From IMG/VR virus record IMGVR_UViG_3300044701_000569, positions 186,001-250,000 of that record: a stretch of DNA of 64,000 nucleotides. One strand, written 5' to 3'. Made by a program: the position numbers and the translations under genes. The notes beneath the pieces were generated by a model that ran no database searches, had not been told where the DNA came from, and saw nothing but the letters and a program-made list of their open reading frames with translations. This document shows, one piece after another, positions 12,105 through 44,052 of the stretch (positions are counted from its first letter, which is position 1; every line of letters begins with the position of its first letter).

Positions 12105-12110
12105 TATTTA
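12105..12110 (-). promoter_or_regulatory. TAAATA late promoter for the tail fibre gene
   Basis: CATAAATAC about 30 nt upstream of the ATG at 12073. Confidence 0.6.
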
Positions 12111-35122: not shown

Positions 35123-35734
35123 TTAAAGAGACTTAAGAGTTCTCTCAGCAAATGTCCAGCCAAATATCTCTTTGGCTTTCCAATCATTCTGTTTGAAACC
35201 TTCAAGATTGGACCATTCACTTTCTTTTGCTATAATATGTTTACTTATGCTTTCCCAGTCTGTGCTGAGAATTTTTTCTTGAATAGATTCTTTCATTTCA
35301 ACTATTTCGTTAAAATGATAACTGTCCCATTCGATATGCACTATTTCCCAAATGCTTCCGCGGTCATCAATATAGTCAAGTGCAAAGTCAAAGCCCCACT
35401 TCTTTTTTGATTTTAACAACATCTGAGCTTTTGGATTTTGAGTCATAAGATCTGTAATTTCATTTCTTGCATCATCTGCAAAGTCACAGCGATGTAATAG
35501 CATACAATGATCTAGAATAAATTTAGGATGCTGAATATTCATCCATGTGTCTTGCCAACACAAGTGATACAAACATTCAGTAAGGGGAAAATTCATTGCA
35601 GCATATAATTTTTTTTCTGCTGCACATAGTTCAAAACCGTCTTTGTCGTACCAACGAAAATCTTCAGGTATTAGATTTGCAGTTTTGGTACAGGTTATAT
35701 CTTTTGTAAAATTATTGACAACAAGATCAAACAT
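35123..35734 (-). CDS. Hypothetical protein
   Basis: 203 aa ORF. Confidence 0.7.
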   Translation of the reverse strand: MFDLVVNNFTKDITCTKTANLIPEDFRWYDKDGFELCAAEKKLYAAMNFPLTECLYHLCWQDTWMNIQHPKFILDHCMLLHRCDFADDARNEITDLMTQNPKAQMLLKSKKKWGFDFALDYIDDRGSIWEIVHIEWDSYHFNEIVEMKESIQEKILSTDWESISKHIIAKESEWSNLEGFKQNDWKAKEIFGWTFAERTLKSL

Positions 35735-36536
35735 CGTCTTTATTCAACGCTGCCCACAGTCTGTCTTTGATAGATTCAGTAGCATAATCTTTCTTATGCT
35801 TTTCTTTGCCTATTTTTGCATCATACTTCTTGTCTTTATGAGTGCCACCTGCGCCACTGGTACGCTTTGCTAACATAGTGCGCCAGTTAGGATCTCTCTG
35901 CTTAGGTGCTTGCACTTTCATGTTATCTGCCTCTTCTATGCCTTCATCTTTAACGTATAGTTTTGGATCAGCCTTTTTCATTAGTTCTATGAACTCTCTT
36001 TTAAGCTCTCTTTCACTGGTAAAGATTTTTTCTAGAGCATACTTAAAAGGTTCTAATTTTGACTGTAGCTTAGGATGCAGTACGCTAGATGAGCTACTCT
36101 GCTTTGCCGTAGCAGGTCGTTTAACGTTGCCGCCTGTAAAGAAATCTCCAACGCCTTTTTCTAAAGCACCAGGGTCGTAATCTTTTACACCCTGTTGCAT
36201 TTGGTCTAGAGGACCTTCACCTACTAGTCTGTCTTTAAATGGATGCTTGGTTCTGCCTGGTTCTGCCTTGGGTTTTGGTTCATTACCTCTAACCTTATCA
36301 GCAGCTTTTTGCTGGCTTTCATTAATAGCAACACCTGCTAGTTTAGCAAAGTCTGCTATGCTGTCAATCTCTAATGGCAACGAACCTTTGGAAACATTTA
36401 CTGTTTCGTTTAGGTAATCTTTAGTTGGGGGGACATTCGCAGGACCTCTAGCTGCTTCCTGCAACTTTTTCAAATCTTCTCTAGGATCACTAGGATCTAT
36501 TTCAAATAGTTTACGTTGCAGTGCATGGAAGTCCAT
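35727..36536 (-). CDS. Lys-rich modular protein, probable head-internal protein
   Basis: Basic modules separated by LNE/INE/VGE/IEE-type sites. Confidence 0.6.
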   Translation of the reverse strand: MDFHALQRKLFEIDPSDPREDLKKLQEAARGPANVPPTKDYLNETVNVSKGSLPLEIDSIADFAKLAGVAINESQQKAADKVRGNEPKPKAEPGRTKHPFKDRLVGEGPLDQMQQGVKDYDPGALEKGVGDFFTGGNVKRPATAKQSSSSSVLHPKLQSKLEPFKYALEKIFTSERELKREFIELMKKADPKLYVKDEGIEEADNMKVQAPKQRDPNWRTMLAKRTSGAGGTHKDKKYDAKIGKEKHKKDYATESIKDRLWAALNKDDV

Positions 36537-36538
36537 GA

Positions 36539-37201
36539 TTAATCCTTCTTAACGTGCTCAGGCTTACCTTTGTGCTTGGTAGCAGCATAATCTTTAGCAT
36601 CTGCCTTGCTCATACCTTTAGCAGCTTTAGCAACATCAGGACTTGCAGCTGGTTCACCTTTCTTAGCAGCATATACCATACCCATGAACTTTTGTTGAGC
36701 CTTACTCTTTGCTTTTTCTGTTACTTGAGCGTGTAGTCTTGCTTTGAAAGGATCTTCCTTTAGGCGGCCATCCTTTTCTGCACTCTTGAGCATAGCAACA
36801 CGATCTTTGTAACCTTTGATACCTGGCTTAATATCTTTAGCAGCCTTCTTCTCGCCTGCTGTTGGATCTTTAACATGCTTCATTGTAGTTTTAGACTGAT
36901 GGCTAGCAGCTTCGCCTACCTGTATTTCCATTTCAGGACCTGCTCCGCCACCGTCAGCACCAAACTTCATTTCGTAGTCTAGATTGTGATATACTGAGCC
37001 AATGTAATCTGCTGACTTGGTGATCTTGCTTTGTACCCAACCTTCAAGACCCTGTTCTTCAGAAACATTCTTAAGCATTTCGTGCAGTTTGATAGCGTAC
37101 TTGGCAATTTTATAAAGCTCTGCACGAGCCATTTGTACTTCATGGTCTCTTTCAGCAGCGCCAGCTAGATCAGCTAAACCTTCTTTAATTTTATCTGTCA
37201 T
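36539..37201 (-). CDS. Lys-rich modular protein with C-terminal DUF3008-like module
   Basis: KAKSKAQQKFMG...A..MSK.DAKDYA.TKHKG.PE; TAAATA at 37232-37237. Confidence 0.65.
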   Translation of the reverse strand: MTDKIKEGLADLAGAAERDHEVQMARAELYKIAKYAIKLHEMLKNVSEEQGLEGWVQSKITKSADYIGSVYHNLDYEMKFGADGGGAGPEMEIQVGEAASHQSKTTMKHVKDPTAGEKKAAKDIKPGIKGYKDRVAMLKSAEKDGRLKEDPFKARLHAQVTEKAKSKAQQKFMGMVYAAKKGEPAASPDVAKAAKGMSKADAKDYAATKHKGKPEHVKKD

Positions 37202-37234
37202 ATTTTTAACTCCAATGAGGCATTGATGTAGTAT

Positions 37235-37408
37235 TTATCGTTTAACTAACTTGCCACCAAATAAACTAACACCCTTCATATCTAGAGCATTATCTGTAGG
37301 TTTTTGTTTTTTAGGTTTCTTTTTACTGTGAGGGTTAGCTACTGCGGCTACACTTCCTGCGCTAGTAGCACCTGCACTAGCAGTTTCTATTAATTCTCTT
37401 AGTCTCAT
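37235..37408 (-). CDS. Small basic protein (57 aa, not in ORF track)
   Basis: MRLRELIE-TASAGATSAGSVAAVANPHSKKKPKK...; ATGA-coupled to the upstream gene. Confidence 0.7.
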   Translation of the reverse strand: MRLRELIETASAGATSAGSVAAVANPHSKKKPKKQKPTDNALDMKGVSLFGGKLVKR

Positions 37409-38493
37409 TTGCTACGCCCTGATTTCATATTAGCGCACCAATGAGCCATGCGAGCTTTCTCACCCGAGCTGTTCTTTGCTACACTGCGAAGTTTTGTAAC
37501 ACTTTGTTTACAGTTAACACCACTACGTTTGGCTAGTCCTTTGCGTCCCGGATTCTTACCATCAGCAAAGTTTTCGTGCATGCCAAAGTTTCCACTCATA
37601 GGCATCTGTTTAATACCAACATCACTTGCAAAACGATCTATAACCATTGCAATTTGAAAGTCTAACAGTGTTAGACCTTTAACATCAGATGTGCTGGTCT
37701 TTACAGTAACTTCTGCAACATCCTGTGTTACTTCACAGAAGTGATCCATTTTTTCGCTGAGCATGTTAATAATCTTAACAAATGCTACAGCAGCTCTATG
37801 ATCGTCTGCTACATATTTTGCTTGTAGCGTTCTATGGTCTAACATTTCCCAGTCTGGAAGATATTTGCTTTTTAAATTATCTAGTGCATCATTAGAAGGT
37901 TTGAATTCCTCAACATCGTTAGCTCTAAATTCACCTTCAGTCATACCGTCACTGCCTCCATCTCCGCTATAGCCCGGATAATAACCATATAAGCCGTAAG
38001 GTCCTGGACCATAAGCTGCACTGCGTAGTTTACGTGTGCTCTTACGTTTCTTCTTACGACTTTCAACATTGTATGTAGGATCTGTCTTTTGACCTTTTTT
38101 AGCACTGTGTCCAGCAGGGTCAATATCAGTAGTTGTTAAACCAAGTTTTAATAAATCTTTTATAAACTCGTGTTCTATATCTTCACTGCCAAATGATATA
38201 ATAGCACTAGGAGGCCCCTTGCCAAAATCATGTTTGCCTAGACCTTTTAGATTGCTAATGTGTTGTCCTAGCTTGTACCAATCATACACGTCGCTTACAT
38301 CTATTTTTACAGTGCCTTTGGGCATAGTAGGTTTAGTTTCTGGACCCATAGGAGGATCATTAGGATGCTGATCTTCATTTTCATTACGACCAGCACAGTG
38401 AGCACGTTGACTAAACCCTTTTGGATTAGAGCAGTTTATAGAACGCTTATATTTGTCGCTCCATTTTTCAGGAAGTACATCTTTTGATTTCAT
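37405..38493 (-). CDS. Modular protein containing a pterin-4a-carbinolamine dehydratase-like domain
   Basis: LPDWE...AVAFV..I..LSEKMDHFCEV...V.VKTSTSDVKGLTLLDF.IA..ID embedded between short basic Cys/His modules. Confidence 0.7.
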   Translation of the reverse strand: MKSKDVLPEKWSDKYKRSINCSNPKGFSQRAHCAGRNENEDQHPNDPPMGPETKPTMPKGTVKIDVSDVYDWYKLGQHISNLKGLGKHDFGKGPPSAIISFGSEDIEHEFIKDLLKLGLTTTDIDPAGHSAKKGQKTDPTYNVESRKKKRKSTRKLRSAAYGPGPYGLYGYYPGYSGDGGSDGMTEGEFRANDVEEFKPSNDALDNLKSKYLPDWEMLDHRTLQAKYVADDHRAAVAFVKIINMLSEKMDHFCEVTQDVAEVTVKTSTSDVKGLTLLDFQIAMVIDRFASDVGIKQMPMSGNFGMHENFADGKNPGRKGLAKRSGVNCKQSVTKLRSVAKNSSGEKARMAHWCANMKSGRSK

Positions 38494-38783
38494 TTTTTAC
38501 TCCCTTTAACAGGTTTTTCTCCTGTCATATATGGAAGGCTAAACCAAAGCTGAAACCATTCAGGTGTTCCTGGCTGTATATTTTTTTCTCTTTGAATTCT
38601 ACCTTTTTCATTACCAGTAACAGATATATTGCTGCCTTGGTATTCGTGTAGTCTTGCTGCATGTCCTAGACCTGCTAGATACTGCATTGATTTAATTTCG
38701 TGTATAGGATCGTTAGGCGGAAGTACACAGTCTTCTGGACTAGCCTGATTTAAATGTTCTGTAGTGATTCTATACTGTTTCAT
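38490..38783 (-). CDS. Hypothetical protein
   Basis: 97 aa ORF (IQPGTPEWFQLWF). Confidence 0.7.
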   Translation of the reverse strand: MKQYRITTEHLNQASPEDCVLPPNDPIHEIKSMQYLAGLGHAARLHEYQGSNISVTGNEKGRIQREKNIQPGTPEWFQLWFSLPYMTGEKPVKGSKK

Positions 38784-39871
38784 TTTGAAGCAGGCTCTCC
38801 AGTTTTAAAAACTTCCCACTTCTTGCCCGTAGCTTGAGACTTCTTTTGAGCCATAGATTTTAATCTATAGTATTCTCTTTCTTCTTCAGGACTGTCAGCA
38901 TATGCACCGTAAGGTCCTGGAAATACTTTCCACTTTTTACCATTAATATAAACAGCAAAGTTATTTCCGGGCTCTGTATTGCCTTCGTCCCAATCTTCAG
39001 GATCTCTTACTCGTTCTGTAGTTTTTCTCATACTCGGTGATACAGCAATAATAGAATCAGGATCAACTCTTGGTTCAACTGTTAAAAATTTCCAACCTGG
39101 ATCAACTACAATTTCAATATCGCCGCCGCTATTAGGAAATGGTTTGTTGTTTGCACTCTTAATTTTAACAGCATCATCGTCAAAATCGACAGCAGTTATT
39201 ATAGATGGAAACTCTTGTCCTTGTGAATTTTTATAAATTACTCGTTGCCCAACACGGAAGTCATTGCCAGGTGTTCCTTCCGCTACACCTTCCGCAGGTT
39301 CTAATTCTTTTACACCCATACCAGTACGCACAGCACTGTAAACATTCTTAGCATTGTTTTGTAAACCTCGCGGTAGGCCTTGTGCAAATGCTTCAAAGTT
39401 ACCTTTCATTGCAGCTTCGCGCATCTTACTAGCACTCATTCCTTCTGCACCTTCTGCATCAGGATCACGCTCACCTGCACTGATTACTTTGATTGATTTA
39501 AAGGTATAGTCTTTGCCGTTGTATTTGTTAAGCATTTCAGAGAAACTATCAAGTCTATCTGAACCTGCTACATATATTAGATTGTCGTAGCCCATTGACT
39601 CAATTTTTTGTAGAGCTTGAATAATTGTTTTTACATTTGCATCGCCCACAGTTACATTAGGAAATGCTGCTTGTGCAAACTCTAGTTTGATATTAAAAGG
39701 AAGCGGGTCGGTTTTGGGCTTTTGAGTTTGTGTTACAAACAAAAAAGGGTCTGCCTTTTGACTTGCAATAACATTAACTAGCTTTTCATGTCCGATGGTA
39801 GGAGGGTTCATTCTACCAAAGGCTATTGCTGCTGTTTTGCCTTCCGCTTCAAAAATCTGTCTTAATCGCAT
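38780..39871 (-). CDS. HIGH-type nucleotidyl/cytidyltransferase-like domain plus appended modules
   Basis: FGRMNPPTIGHEKL, VAGSDR, SAGERDPDAEGAEGMSASKMR; then an SH3-like module and a further module. Confidence 0.75.
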   Translation of the reverse strand: MRLRQIFEAEGKTAAIAFGRMNPPTIGHEKLVNVIASQKADPFLFVTQTQKPKTDPLPFNIKLEFAQAAFPNVTVGDANVKTIIQALQKIESMGYDNLIYVAGSDRLDSFSEMLNKYNGKDYTFKSIKVISAGERDPDAEGAEGMSASKMREAAMKGNFEAFAQGLPRGLQNNAKNVYSAVRTGMGVKELEPAEGVAEGTPGNDFRVGQRVIYKNSQGQEFPSIITAVDFDDDAVKIKSANNKPFPNSGGDIEIVVDPGWKFLTVEPRVDPDSIIAVSPSMRKTTERVRDPEDWDEGNTEPGNNFAVYINGKKWKVFPGPYGAYADSPEEEREYYRLKSMAQKKSQATGKKWEVFKTGEPASK

Positions 39872-40203
39872 TAGTAAACCCCCTTCTGAATGTTGTTTAA
39901 CTCTTCAGAATATAATTTCTGTATCAACCCTTTTTTGTCTTCGTTGGTTAATAGATCATCGGGGTGTTTGTTGATTTTAAATTTCTTGCAGTAACTATGT
40001 GCGGCTTTATTAATCATTGATCCAAAAATAGATTCAGGACTAACAGATTCTTTTTTGTCATGAGATGCCTTCATGCTTATAATGGCAGGAAACATTTCCT
40101 TTCTATAAAACACAGGATCGTTTCTCATATACACAGACAAGTCATCAACTACGTCAAATGGTAACTTGTCATTTTCTATTTTAGAAAATTCTTCAATGCG
40201 CAT
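39871..40203 (-). CDS. Hypothetical protein
   Basis: 110 aa ORF with AAGGA SD. Confidence 0.7.
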   Translation of the reverse strand: MRIEEFSKIENDKLPFDVVDDLSVYMRNDPVFYRKEMFPAIISMKASHDKKESVSPESIFGSMINKAAHSYCKKFKINKHPDDLLTNEDKKGLIQKLYSEELNNIQKGVY

Positions 40204-40212
40204 GTTTAATCC

Positions 40213-40773
40213 TTACCACTTACGGCAGGACCAGTAGCGTGCCTTATGGCGTGGTCCTGGATTGTCGCAGTTGTGACGAGCACGGAAGCTGCGTCTACGA
40301 GCTGGATTTGACTTTTTAATCTTCATGTTAGGGTCACCAAAGTTTACCTTAACTACATTGCCGCCCGGCTTACGAACATATACTTTAAATTTCTTAACAT
40401 CGCCTCTCATAGGCTTGCCTAATGGAACCGAGCGACCTTGATATTCAGCTTCGTCCAAAGCGTCATCTTCATTGAACCACATTACGCCGTATTCTAAAAA
40501 GAAATTATCGCCGTCGTACGTTTCTTCGTCTACAGGTTCACCTTCTACAGACATCTCTATATCAAAATCATCATAGCCTTCGTCTTGAAGATAACTAGTT
40601 AGATGTTCTGCAAACTTATCAGCTTCTTCTTCTGAAAGCTGACGTGGAAGGGGTATATCTACAACTGTAGCACCCCTGTCTGATTCATACACTAGATTGT
40701 TTGGGAAAATTGATTCATCTAACTTCTGCGCTAGATCTGTCTTTTCCATTATTACTCTAATAAAATGTTCCAT
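40213..40773 (-). CDS. Acidic N-terminal / basic C-terminal modular protein
   Basis: C-terminal KKFKVYV...VKVNFGD...RRSFRARHNC...ARYWSC after ALDE. Confidence 0.7.
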   Translation of the reverse strand: MEHFIRVIMEKTDLAQKLDESIFPNNLVYESDRGATVVDIPLPRQLSEEEADKFAEHLTSYLQDEGYDDFDIEMSVEGEPVDEETYDGDNFFLEYGVMWFNEDDALDEAEYQGRSVPLGKPMRGDVKKFKVYVRKPGGNVVKVNFGDPNMKIKKSNPARRRSFRARHNCDNPGPRHKARYWSCRKW

Positions 40774-41128: not shown

Positions 41129-41819
41129 ACTTATATTTATCAATATCGCCCTTGTAGACTATTTTGTCTACTTTGCGTATTGCATGACCTATAAGCATCT
41201 CAACTAGCGACATAACACGGTCGTCACGTACATAAATGTAACTTCCGTTCGCAAATCCATTACCAATATCTTTAAGTGTTTTAGGACCTACTTTTACTTT
41301 GTCAGTGTTAGATTTTAACCAATTGTAAGCATTAGCATCAAGCCTCTTGTAGGATAAGTGTACTTGATATTGATAAGAACTGGGATAATTTACAATTATT
41401 AAGTTTTCTTTGCGCGAAAGAAGATCAACTGCTTCCGGGCTTGGTTCCCAAAACTCCTTAACACTTACACGCATTTTATTAGAAATTTTCATTAAAAGAC
41501 TTCTATTGCTACTGTATATGTTAAGTGTATTAGATTCGCATCTTACTTTATAGTCACTGGCTTTTTTTAAGATATTGTAAATATCCTTAGCATCAAAAAA
41601 TGCGTCCTCAGTTATTTCTACTGTAGATCTATATGTGGTCTTAGTTAAGGGTTCACCTGCTTTATGCTGTGCTGTTAGAGTATCTAATCTAACTTTAGCA
41701 TGAGCTAACTTTTTATCAGAATTTGAATCTGATCTAAAAATTGTAGCCAGCGGATTGGAAAGTACCAGTTTGTACAGGTACTTTCCGTGATGCAGTTTTT
41801 TAGTTTCAAACAGTCTCAT
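41118..41819 (-). CDS. Hypothetical protein
   Basis: About 233 aa ORF downstream of clpA; start 41819 or 41831. Confidence 0.65.
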   Translation of the reverse strand: MRLFETKKLHHGKYLYKLVLSNPLATIFRSDSNSDKKLAHAKVRLDTLTAQHKAGEPLTKTTYRSTVEITEDAFFDAKDIYNILKKASDYKVRCESNTLNIYSSNRSLLMKISNKMRVSVKEFWEPSPEAVDLLSRKENLIIVNYPSSYQYQVHLSYKRLDANAYNWLKSNTDKVKVGPKTLKDIGNGFANGSYIYVRDDRVMSLVEMLIGHAIRKVDKIVYKGDIDKYKYDD

Positions 41820-44052
41820 TAGCTGCTTCATTTACTACACAGTCCAATTTGATTTCGTTTTCACGATAGTCAACAGTTACACTGCCCCCATTCTTTAAAT
41901 CACCAAACAGTATCTGTCTTGACAAGGGACGCTTAATCTCTTTGTCAATAACACGCTGTAGAGGTCTTGCACCCATCTTAGGGTCAAATCCCTTATCTAC
42001 TAGATAGTCTAATGCTTCGTCAGTAATTGAGATAGCAATGTTCTTTTCCTTGACCATTTGCTTGAGTTCTAACAGGAACTTGCCTACAATCTTCATCATA
42101 GTTTCCTTGCTCAACTTAGCAAACGTAATTACACCGTCTAGTCTGTTGCGGAATTCAGGTGCAAAGAATTTCTTAAGCTCACTGTCATTGTAGTTGCCTT
42201 CAATTGAATCATTAAATCCAATCTTGTTCTTTTCAGCTTCCTTAGCGCCTAGGTTAGTGGTAAGGATTAGGATACAGTTTCTACCATCAGCTTCCTTGCC
42301 ATTTGAACCTGTTACTTTACCGTTATCCATCAACTGTAGTAGGATTTGGCTAACATCAGGGTGTGCCTTTTCAATTTCATCCAGCAGTAATACACAGTTT
42401 GGATTTTCCTGTAGCTTGGTAATCAGCAAGCCTGCATTTTCTTCAAAACCAACATAACCAGGAGGTGAACCAATCAACTTGCTAACAGCATGCTTCTCTT
42501 GATATTCACTCATATCAAATCTTACTAGCTTGACACCGAGATGTTTAGATAGCTGTTTGGCTGTTTCGGTCTTACCTGTACCTGTTGGACCCATAAACAC
42601 AAATGCACCTACGGGCTTGTCATCTGCTTTTAGACCAGCTTGGCTAACAAGTATCTTGTCAACAATGCTTTCAATAGCATCATCCTGTCCATATACACCC
42701 TGCTTGAGGTTGTTTTCTAGGTTCACAAGATTTTCTGTTTCTCTTTCTGCTACTTGTTCAGCAGGAAGATTAACAATCTTAGCCAGTTCGTATTGAATTT
42801 CAGCAGCGCCTACAACCTTATTGTCCTTTTGATTCTTGAGCTTGAATCTTGAACAAGCAACGTCAATGAGGTCAATAGCCTTGTCCGGCAGCTTCTTATC
42901 ACTCTGATACTTCACACTGAGTTTGACTGCTGCTTCAATTGCAGCGTCAGTAATTTCTGTCTTGTGATAGTCTTCATAATACTTCTTAATACCTTGTAGG
43001 ATATCTTTAGTAGTTTCTGGAGAAGGCTCATCTACAGTTACTCTCTGGAATCTGCGCATCAGCGCACGATCCTTTTCAAAGTACTTGCGGTATTCTTCCC
43101 AAGTAGTACTTGCTACTACCTTCAAGTCGCCTTTGGTAAGAGCTGGCTTGAGCATGTTAGCGAGATCATTAGCACCACCGCTGCCACCAGCACCAGCACC
43201 ACTCATCATGTGTGCTTCGTCGATGAACATGATAGTCTTACCCTGCTTAGTTAGAGCCTGTAGCACTAACTTGAAGCGTTCTTCAAAGTCGCCTCGATAC
43301 TTAGATCCTGCCAGCATTGAACCAATGTCTAGTACATAAACACTGTAGTCCTGCAGAAACTCCGGTACGTCCTTGTTTACAATCTTATATGCAAGTCCTT
43401 CTGCAATGGCAGTTTTACCTACACCGGGATCACCGACCATTAGCACATTGTTCTTTGAACGACGTCCTAGTGCTAGTGCAATAGAATCTAATTCTTCACT
43501 ACGACCAATAATAGGATCAATCTTGTTACGCTTTACTTCGTCATTTAGATTAGTAGTAAACGCTCTCAATGCCCTTCGAGCTTCGCTGCTGATAGAATTA
43601 TCCTCTTCAACTTCCTCTTCAACTTCGTTATTAAGAAATTCAGCAAACTTGTCTTTTACAATGTTAGCCTCATTAAGATAATATACAGCTATGCTACGTT
43701 TTTCAGTTAGCATGCTAAGAAGTACGTCGGATAAATTAATATGATTTCGACCATTAAACAATGTTTGCGTAAATGCTCTATTAAGCACACGCTCAACTGC
43801 TTGTGTTTTCTTAGGCTTAAACTTTTCTAGCTCTGTCTTTAAGTCATCACAATTAGTCTTTAAATGATGCTCTAAATTTGTTTTGATAAAGTTAACGTCA
43901 CTGCCATACATGGACAATACATTGACAAAATTTTCCTCACAGAGCATAGCATAGAGAAGATGCTCTAGAGTAACATATTCATGCTTTAACTTCTGAGCAT
44001 CTTTAACTGCTTTATCAAATACTAATGTTAACTCTTCTGATGGTTCGACCAT
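41806..44052 (-). CDS. clpA: ATP-dependent Clp protease ATPase subunit, ClpA-like
   Basis: N-domain HEYVTLEHLL; two AAA modules (GDPGVGKT, GPTGTGKT); GSPPGYVG; IGF loop; no ClpB middle coil. Confidence 0.92.
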   Translation of the reverse strand: MVEPSEELTLVFDKAVKDAQKLKHEYVTLEHLLYAMLCEENFVNVLSMYGSDVNFIKTNLEHHLKTNCDDLKTELEKFKPKKTQAVERVLNRAFTQTLFNGRNHINLSDVLLSMLTEKRSIAVYYLNEANIVKDKFAEFLNNEVEEEVEEDNSISSEARRALRAFTTNLNDEVKRNKIDPIIGRSEELDSIALALGRRSKNNVLMVGDPGVGKTAIAEGLAYKIVNKDVPEFLQDYSVYVLDIGSMLAGSKYRGDFEERFKLVLQALTKQGKTIMFIDEAHMMSGAGAGGSGGANDLANMLKPALTKGDLKVVASTTWEEYRKYFEKDRALMRRFQRVTVDEPSPETTKDILQGIKKYYEDYHKTEITDAAIEAAVKLSVKYQSDKKLPDKAIDLIDVACSRFKLKNQKDNKVVGAAEIQYELAKIVNLPAEQVAERETENLVNLENNLKQGVYGQDDAIESIVDKILVSQAGLKADDKPVGAFVFMGPTGTGKTETAKQLSKHLGVKLVRFDMSEYQEKHAVSKLIGSPPGYVGFEENAGLLITKLQENPNCVLLLDEIEKAHPDVSQILLQLMDNGKVTGSNGKEADGRNCILILTTNLGAKEAEKNKIGFNDSIEGNYNDSELKKFFAPEFRNRLDGVITFAKLSKETMMKIVGKFLLELKQMVKEKNIAISITDEALDYLVDKGFDPKMGARPLQRVIDKEIKRPLSRQILFGDLKNGGSVTVDYRENEIKLDCVVNEAANETV

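Follow-up and report, generated by a model that had tools for sequence, protein, structure and literature searches.

Probable internal head proteins with exchangeable modules in a block of eight genes of a large T4-like phage

Described systems and the gene block

In phage T4 the prohead protease gp21 cuts after L/I-x-E, and leaders ending in such a site target proteins to the prohead core (PMC9026906). Here we describe a gene block which appears to follow the same logic. It lies in a 64,000-nucleotide stretch of DNA (the window), that is, bases 186001-250000 of the IMG/VR virus record IMGVR_UViG_3300044701_000569, which comprises 357,559 bp, is rated complete and belongs to a T4-like phage. 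The block consists of eight tightly packed minus-strand open reading frames (ORFs) at window positions 35727-40773, which code for proteins of 186, 110, 363, 97, 362, 57, 220 and 269 aa. We think that the locus probably encodes internal head proteins which would be targeted by a leader and cut into modules by the prohead protease. An earlier reading of the letters alone (the sequence-only reading) had described the block as head-packaged polyproteins punctuated by hydrophobic-x-Glu (h-x-E) sites. All eight ORFs and every peptide quoted there are found on the minus strand at the positions given.

The T4 proteins IPI, IPII, IPIII and Alt share with the block a short leader at the N-terminus, similar in type (EF-I-x-E or EL-L-x-E) and ending in hydrophobic-x-Glu. 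In both cases there is a gp21-family protease together with a T4-like head gene set, the cargo comprises small basic products and an enzyme, and the genes are placed apart from the head cluster and differ from relative to relative. Unlike in T4, the leaders of the block have 8-9 residues (about 10-19 aa in the T4 class), the P3 residue of the sites is mostly V/I/M as well as L, NMNAT-like and pterin-4a-carbinolamine dehydratase (PCD)-like domains are among the cargo, and the proteins are multi-module chains with internal sites, whose modules are fused, split and reordered across phages.

In the phages phiKZ, 201phi2-1 and SPN3US a related prohead protease acts after Glu on many head-internal inner-body or ejection proteins, which are thought to be ejected (PMC5694885). 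Their motif has a small P3 residue (A/S/G-x-E), the propeptides are often longer than 100 residues, and there are paralogs with conserved N-termini (PMC5694885). The block is of a different type: junction P3 is V/I/M/L in 75-78% and the leaders have 8-9 aa. Polyvalent proteins of phages and conjugative elements are very large multidomain chains, often with their own peptidase. As in these and in viral polyproteins, several functional units are placed on one chain and would be released or delivered together. The chains of the block, in contrast, are small (57-363 aa), no peptidase domain was detected in them by Pfam, PHROGs or NCBIfam, and they would need the capsid maturation protease in trans.

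NMNAT/cytidylyltransferase homologs have been found by mass spectrometry in virions of four cyanomyoviruses (S-SCSM1 ORF91, S-SZBM1_140, S-CREM2 ORF154 and S-CBWM1), and the virion papers treat the presence of NMNAT in the particles as unexplained. The enzyme domain is homologous to that of the block and has syntenic neighbours (DUF3008 and the 57-aa type); the version in the window differs in being fused to two extra modules. In the GenBank record of S-SCSM1 the syntenic genes are marked as virion proteins from mass spectrometry, namely NMNAT ORF91, DUF3008 ORF93, ORFs 89, 90 and 92 and the 57-aa-type ORF97. S-SCSM1 ORF91 starts MKSFLQFLKE/AAE and SSM1_190, the NMNAT protein of S-SM1, starts MKKFSAFLNE/AE (here and below a slash marks the junction); the latter also has leader-like neighbours. 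Literature searches on DUF3008, and on capsid-targeting sequences or gp23 propeptides of cyanophages, gave nothing specific.

The block is made up as follows, in the direction of transcription.

40213-40773, minus strand: 186-aa ORF, two parts split at ALDE108
40450-40773, minus strand: residues 1-108 of the 186-aa ORF, acidic (net -26), ending at ALDE108
40216-40449, minus strand: residues 109-186 of the 186-aa ORF, basic Cys-containing module (net +18, pI 11.3; phrog_7595, DUF5754-like)
39871-40203, minus strand: 110-aa single-module ORF, kept beside the NMNAT gene; the family N-terminus M[KRL]L.EL[FD] is leader-like
39848-39871, minus strand: leader MRLRQIFE of the 363-aa ORF, which ends in the cut site and may serve as a capsid-targeting sequence
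39278-39847, minus strand: NMNAT/cytidylyltransferase-like domain, residues 9-198 of the 363-aa ORF, ending in the linker ..GVKE189 LEPAEGVAE198
38783-39277, minus strand: two further modules of the 363-aa ORF, beta-rich GNDFRVGQ (residues 199-288) and RVRDPEDWDEG (residues 289-363)
38490-38783, minus strand: 97-aa ORF with a 29-residue N-terminal extension to PIHE29, where most homologs (65-76 aa) start
37405-38493, minus strand: 362-aa ORF in six parts, that is, leader 1-9 (VLPE9), Cys-basic module to about residue 40 (NENE), folded module about 41-144 (YNVE144), basic Gly/Tyr-rich stretch 145-186 (GMTE186), PCD-like domain 187-307 (GMHE307; Pfam PF01329) and the NFADG module
37408-37572, minus strand: NFADG module, residues 308-362 of the 362-aa ORF, basic and helical
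37235-37408, minus strand: 57-aa ORF with leader MRLRELIE (37385-37408), then TASAGATSAG... and a Lys-rich tail (net +8)
36539-37201, minus strand: 220-aa ORF with leader KIKE7, an acidic helical part (8-97), a basic part (98-162, QVTE162) and DUF3008 (163-220)
36542-36715, minus strand: DUF3008 module of the 220-aa ORF (PF11450)
35727-36536, minus strand: 269-aa ORF with N-terminal module 1-107 (LVGE107), variable middle 108-202 (GIEE202) and basic RDPNW..GAG.HKDKK module 203-269

Leaders, protease and the capsid protein junction

The head cluster of the genome is T4-like in order. It comprises the portal, an 82-aa gp67-like protein, an acidic 322-aa protein, the 207-aa prohead protease, a 364-aa gp22-like scaffold and a 391-aa gp23 homolog with 30% identity to T4 gp23, which corresponds to the T4 succession gp20/67-like/21/22/23. 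The protease belongs to family S77, the gp21 family (PF03420 with 91-92 bits; phrog_207 with 3e-57), and is present in all five related large records which were checked. A gp21-family protease and a scaffold core are thus encoded by the same phage. In T4 itself, a Glu-to-Asp change at P1 prevents the cut while targeting is retained.

The N-termini of the T4 proteins (NC_000866) are MKTYQEFIAE/A in IPII and IPIII, MKTFKEF...TITE/A in IPI and MAKINELLRE/S in gp24. In the block and its relatives we find MRLRQIFE/A, MRLRELIE/T, MKAHEFITE/N, MKTFKELFE/N (the start of relatives of the 186-aa ORF) and MKIRELLE/T, short leaders which resemble the T4 sequences MKTYQEFIAE and MKTFKEF. The near identity of MRLRQIFE and MRLRELIE had already been pointed out in the sequence-only reading, and both are conserved in homologs. 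In the NMNAT family all 46 unique homolog N-termini carry M[KRL]L.[EQ]LFE with the Glu at residue 8 and FGRMNPP a few residues on, although the domain itself is only 30-60% identical. In the 57-aa family, which starts with MKI[RKS][ED][IL][LFI]E, 38 of 39 contexts show h-x-E at the aligned position, so that both families end their leader in the gp21 motif (L/I)-x-Glu. For the 110-aa family, h-x-E is found within 13 residues in 14 of 15 unique N-termini. Across the block [ILVM]-x-E ends within residue 13 in seven of the eight ORFs, compared with 21% of all genome ORFs (hypergeometric p = 9e-5). The leader of the 363-aa ORF is predicted to form a short helix at residues 3-8. A complex prediction of the S77 protease with residues 1-30 of the 57-aa ORF scored 0.00, which is evidence neither for nor against an interaction. 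No conserved leader was found on the 237-aa and 114/119-aa ORFs upstream of the block; these ORFs are left out of the leader-tagged set.

The capsid protein provides a further parallel. T4 gp23 is cut at ...FLTE/AEIGG (T4 record), and the gp23 homolog of the phage (genome positions 109350-110525) reads ...RRYLAE/SATAGATSAG nine residues downstream of the aligned T4 site. YL[AS]E/SATAGATSAG is conserved in four related records and is the predicted maturation junction. The 57-aa family repeats this very decapeptide (E/SATAGATSAG) right behind its leader. The 57-aa ORF might bind where the N-arm of the capsid protein binds, or it may compete for the protease. Its counterpart in S-SM1 is annotated as 'major head protein'.

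T4-like leaders are also found elsewhere in the genome (347399-353692, 327252-328892 and 59022-59516), namely MRFQEFKTLLTE/AA, MKFRELLVIKE/AV, MKIKDVMVE/M and MRSFIEVLQE/S. The first of these belongs to a DUF6267 protein. In cyanophages its homologs are encoded next to the NMNAT gene, and in S-SCSM1 they are virion proteins. Two leader-bearing ORFs outside the window match 'virion structural protein' PHROGs. These similarities suggest a second internal-protein locus.

Modules, junctions and surroundings of the block

A scan of viral contigs using the 363-aa protein yielded 80 related viral loci with the same gene order. For eight module families in these loci we counted the unique sequences immediately before the module. 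P1 is Glu in 155 of the 158 contexts (98%), which are unique but not phylogenetically independent, and P3 is V/I/M/L in 119 of them. A hydrophobic P3 accompanies the junction Glu in 114 of 146 contexts (78%), compared with 452 of 2007 (23%) for all other Glu of the same proteins (odds ratio 12, Fisher p = 4e-42). The motif is thus far commoner at module borders than elsewhere in the same proteins, in favour of the sequence-only reading, which had proposed this comparison. Judged from these contexts, the near-invariant determinant is the P1 Glu, with P3 usually V/I/M/L and P4 often G, D or I.

The rule is also seen in the single families. Glu precedes the NFADG module in 45/45 contexts (in eight of them the module is directly behind a leader), the C-terminal module of the 186-aa ORF in 34/34 unique contexts within proteins of 118-535 aa, and the RVRDPEDW module in 39/41 unique contexts. 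DUF3008 is preceded by [IV]-x-E in all six contexts containing the module. In the 97-aa family an [IL]-x-E/[FY][KQ]G site is kept as well (LHE47 in this copy). The motif at residue 107 of the 269-aa ORF is kept in 66 of 73 homologs from a search of 5.8 billion proteins, and 12 homolog high-scoring segment pairs (HSPs) stop exactly there, with different modules beyond. The N-terminal module of this ORF holds two internal conserved motifs, YLNE44 and AINE73, and one relative (P0078) combines a leader, the sub-module 75-107 and DUF6267. Because the module starts NFADG, RVRDPEDW and TATAGATS also occur directly behind an 8-9-residue leader with Glu as its last residue, this Glu is part of the junction and not of either module. 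The behaviour of the RVRDPEDW module is similar: at the C-terminus it ends with ...TGEPAT-stop (29 cases), and in other positions it gains an ES[IVL]xE linker before one of six different modules (10 cases).

The modules are shuffled between homologs at these sites, which bears out a check proposed in the sequence-only reading. Among related loci at least ten different sequences continue the chain after the NMNAT domain, and the RVRDPEDWDEG module is found in proteins with lengths of 125-796 aa. In relatives, NMNAT is fused to the PCD-like module which is part of the 362-aa ORF here, and L014 and L023 have two modules in opposite order. In L055 (5561-7237) and L038 (7001-8527) NMNAT and the next gene are fused in frame, and the Met and leader of the second gene are retained in the middle of the protein (..VEE/NTMRAKEFEV.. 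and ..TESTDMKAKEFIP..). We take the internal Met and leader as the record of a fusion by stop-codon loss.

Homologs back most of the sites quoted in the sequence-only reading as borders or leader ends, that is, QIFE8, GVAE198, ALDE108, GMTE186, GMHE307, QVTE162, AINE73, LVGE107, GIEE202 and ELIE8. YLNE44 is conserved (71/74) but not supported as a border, VLPE9 is backed by one homolog context only and QVGE97 is weak. In the four contexts of KIKE7 the motif is not kept at the aligned position. Further Glu junctions had been missed, namely E38/E40 and YNVE144 in the 362-aa ORF, TTE288 in the 363-aa ORF and PIHE29 in the 97-aa ORF. The part borders of the 362-aa ORF are also backed by HSP breakpoints.

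The junctions are predicted to fall in disordered linkers. In the AlphaFold models the junctions have pLDDT values (the per-residue confidence) under 50; in the 363-aa ORF they are residues 184-203 and 283-301, in the 362-aa ORF residues 1-39, 145-201 and 295-310. This disorder would also suit another explanation, that the h-x-E junctions are mere conserved flexible linkers or recombination seams favouring module exchange and that the proteins act uncut in the virion or the cytoplasm. Short common junction peptides such as EGVAEG and ESIxE recur, and the cleavage of the proteins is something that we infer. We regard this explanation as improbable, since it accounts neither for a near-invariant Glu amid varying neighbour residues nor for N-terminal leaders whose last residues form the same motif exactly where the module begins. 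The match of the motif to the specificity of the phage-encoded protease family and the copying of the capsid protein maturation junction would likewise remain unexplained.

Several modules have recognizable folds. Residues 9-198 of the 363-aa ORF are a predicted nucleotidyltransferase of the NMNAT/cytidylyltransferase-like superfamily. The domain matches phrog_3041 with E = 3e-55, and homolog HSPs stop at 185-203. GRMNPPTIGH at residues 19-28 contains the (H/T)-x-G-H motif in the form TIGH, and Foldseek retrieves PPAT/NadD structures (E = 1e-4, TM about 0.6), in agreement with a Rossmann-like fold; the score for Pfam PF01467 is 17.1 bits, under the cut-off of 21. The next two modules of this ORF, GNDFRVGQ and RVRDPEDWDEG, are joined in this copy at KTTE288, without a hydrophobic P3. 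By tblastn the RVRDPEDW module has no match in 50,697 cultured-phage records, so it is known so far only from uncultured contigs. For the PCD-like domain PF01329 gives 60.6 bits at residues 206-287 of the 362-aa ORF (curated cut-off 26). NCBIfam added nothing beyond sub-threshold PCD matches, its equivalogs scoring below their cut-offs, and a Foldseek search of the PDB with the 362-aa model yielded no significant match (best E about 1). The PCD region of this model is poor because the alignment used misplaced PCD segments. DUF3008 is recognized by PF11450 with 31.6 bits at residues 164-217 of the 220-aa ORF (curated cut-off 24).

As the sequence-only reading had maintained, many fragments predicted from cuts at the supported sites are very basic (pI 9.8-11.3); they alternate with acidic ones (down to net -26). 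This bears on a second alternative, namely that the proteins are scaffold or core components like gp22, gp67 and gp68 of T4, which are cut and mostly expelled before DNA packaging, so that nothing is delivered to the host. In T4 core proteins, too, h-x-E lies close to the N-terminus, and the same protease family cuts them repeatedly after Glu; several fragments of the block share with them a strongly acidic character (for instance residues 1-108 of the 186-aa ORF, net -26), and the same N-terminal motif is found in the head-gene cluster of this genome. The T4 proteins are, in contrast, dedicated scaffold parts encoded in the head cluster, and here a separate gp22-like scaffold and an acidic core protein are already present in that cluster. 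The block contains intact enzyme folds (NMNAT with TIGH, and PCD) alongside numerous very basic peptides, which differ from acidic scaffold fragments, and its homologs are still found in mature virions. A scaffold function of the block as a whole is thus unlikely, but some fragments could be expelled scaffold-like pieces or DNA counter-ions and not effectors.

Three of the small basic modules, in the ORFs at 40213-40773 and 37405-38493 (both minus strand), have a two-Cys pattern in common (..NC..P...RAHC.., ..RHNC....ARYWSC.. and ..VNC......MAHWC..). From this pattern they may form one mini-domain family, which is possibly DNA-binding. At its C-terminus the 186-aa ORF is similar to small viral proteins of the DUF5754-like kind. 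The genes downstream of NMNAT in related loci (e.g. L075, 1754-2788) are mostly headed by a very conserved basic N-terminal module, MKAKEFIPASKPRNFVAKNQKT.GAG.HKDKK..KQGDVKHK, of which the C-terminus of the 269-aa ORF is a diverged copy. The MKAKEFIPASKPRNFVAKNQKT module may stay attached to its leader, because the leader has Pro at the place where Glu is expected.

On one side of the block there are virion-structural-like ORFs and a ClpA-like ATPase, and on the other there is the family-B DNA polymerase. We note the following features in and around it.

41806-44052, minus strand: 748-aa ClpA/ClpB-like double AAA+ ATPase (phrog_4871, E = 7e-255), directly upstream of the gene run
41134-41140, minus strand: ATAAATA just upstream of the 114/119-aa virion-structural-like ORF which heads the tightly packed gene run
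37232-37238, minus strand: ATAAATA in the one larger gap within the block, 31 nt ahead of the 220-aa ORF
35123-35734, minus strand: 203-aa ORF directly after the block, with an 8-base overlap with the 269-aa ORF; neither Pfam nor PHROGs gives a match, and none of the 80 related loci contains a homolog

The window contains 11 copies of ATAAATA where 27.6 would be expected, a strong depletion. They are spread over 4505-63479; nine belong to the gene strand, and most copies precede a start codon by 6-34 nt; minus-strand examples start at 12105, 13306, 16850, 37232, 41134, 51037, 59918 and 63473. The placement is suggestive of a T4-like late-promoter element of this phage. The canonical T4 late promoter TATAAATA was considered and rejected, as it is absent from the window (about 8 expected) and only the shorter ATAAATA is placed like a promoter.

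Proposed processing and its meaning

Several observations weigh against internal head proteins cut by the prohead protease. About a quarter of the junctions have no hydrophobic P3 (e.g. SIEHE/N, YNVE/N and KTTE/R), and the counted contexts are, as said, not phylogenetically independent. The common leader of downstream genes, MKAKEFIPAS, has no Glu at the expected place, and there is no obvious leader on the DUF3008 protein of S-SCSM1 and on most homologs of the 97-aa and 220-aa ORFs. No credible alignment to T4 IPI, IPII or IPIII was obtained by BLASTP (best E = 0.12); the proteins are thus not members of those families and share only the targeting and processing logic. The published virion proteomes of cyanomyoviruses report neither processing nor a targeting leader. 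Finally, [ILVM]-x-E is not enriched in the block, with 33 instances in 1664 aa or 1.98 per 100 aa, compared with 1.61 per 100 aa in the other 431 genome ORFs, and the raw density is therefore unusable as evidence. About 2 motifs per 100 aa are expected anyway, and one could argue that the motif is simply common and that the sites arose by chance in ordinary proteins, be they multidomain, early or metabolic. The highly significant positional tests, the conserved leaders and the homologs in virions make this very improbable.

Most likely, the T4 logic of targeting and internal proteins is extended here to multi-module chains whose parts are exchanged at the predicted cleavage sites. The cargo interpretation of the sequence-only reading is supported in this respect; what we infer is that the proteins are actually cut, that they are packaged in this uncultured phage and that they enter the host with the DNA, which the sequence-only reading too had put only as a possibility. 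The processing might run as follows. A leader of the form M-(K/R)-x-x-(E/Q/D)-(L/I/F)-(F/I/L)-(x)-E would carry each protein into the scaffolding core of the prohead. There the serine protease of the gp21 family would cut after Glu in h-x-E sites (P3 V/I/M/L), so that the leader is removed and the modules are parted at the linkers. The products would be a few folded enzymes and domains (the NMNAT-like nucleotidyltransferase, the PCD-like domain, the beta-rich and alpha/beta modules), several very basic peptides of 30-80 residues (DUF3008, NFADG, DUF5754-like, PRNF/RDPNW-HKDKK) and acidic pieces. The basic pieces would remain with the packaged DNA, and the acidic ones may exit the head as T4 scaffold fragments do. 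As every module has its own site, modules could be fused, split or reordered between phages while packaging and release are kept.

A conserved T4-style leader together with protease-site junctions would offer a concrete mechanism for how NMNAT enters cyanomyovirus particles. If this is true, the T4 capsid-targeting principle, known so far from a few proteins of enterobacterial phages and from its use in engineering, extends to a widespread and diverse locus of aquatic giant and cyanophage T4-like phages. Nature would then use capsid targeting in a combinatorial way, with modules exchanged at cleavage sites. Moreover, the peptide content of mature virions would become predictable from sequence, and ready-made leaders and linkers would be available for packaging foreign proteins into such phages.

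A more far-reaching idea, which we put forward only tentatively, is that large aquatic T4-like phages keep a natural system of protein-delivery cassettes, in which modules flanked by a leader or h-x-Glu are loaded, freed and injected with the genome, and are swapped, fused and reordered as cargo. Should this be so, NMNAT-like and PCD-like enzymes and basic DNA-binding peptides would affect the NAD or pterin metabolism of the host, or shield the DNA, before the phage genes are expressed.

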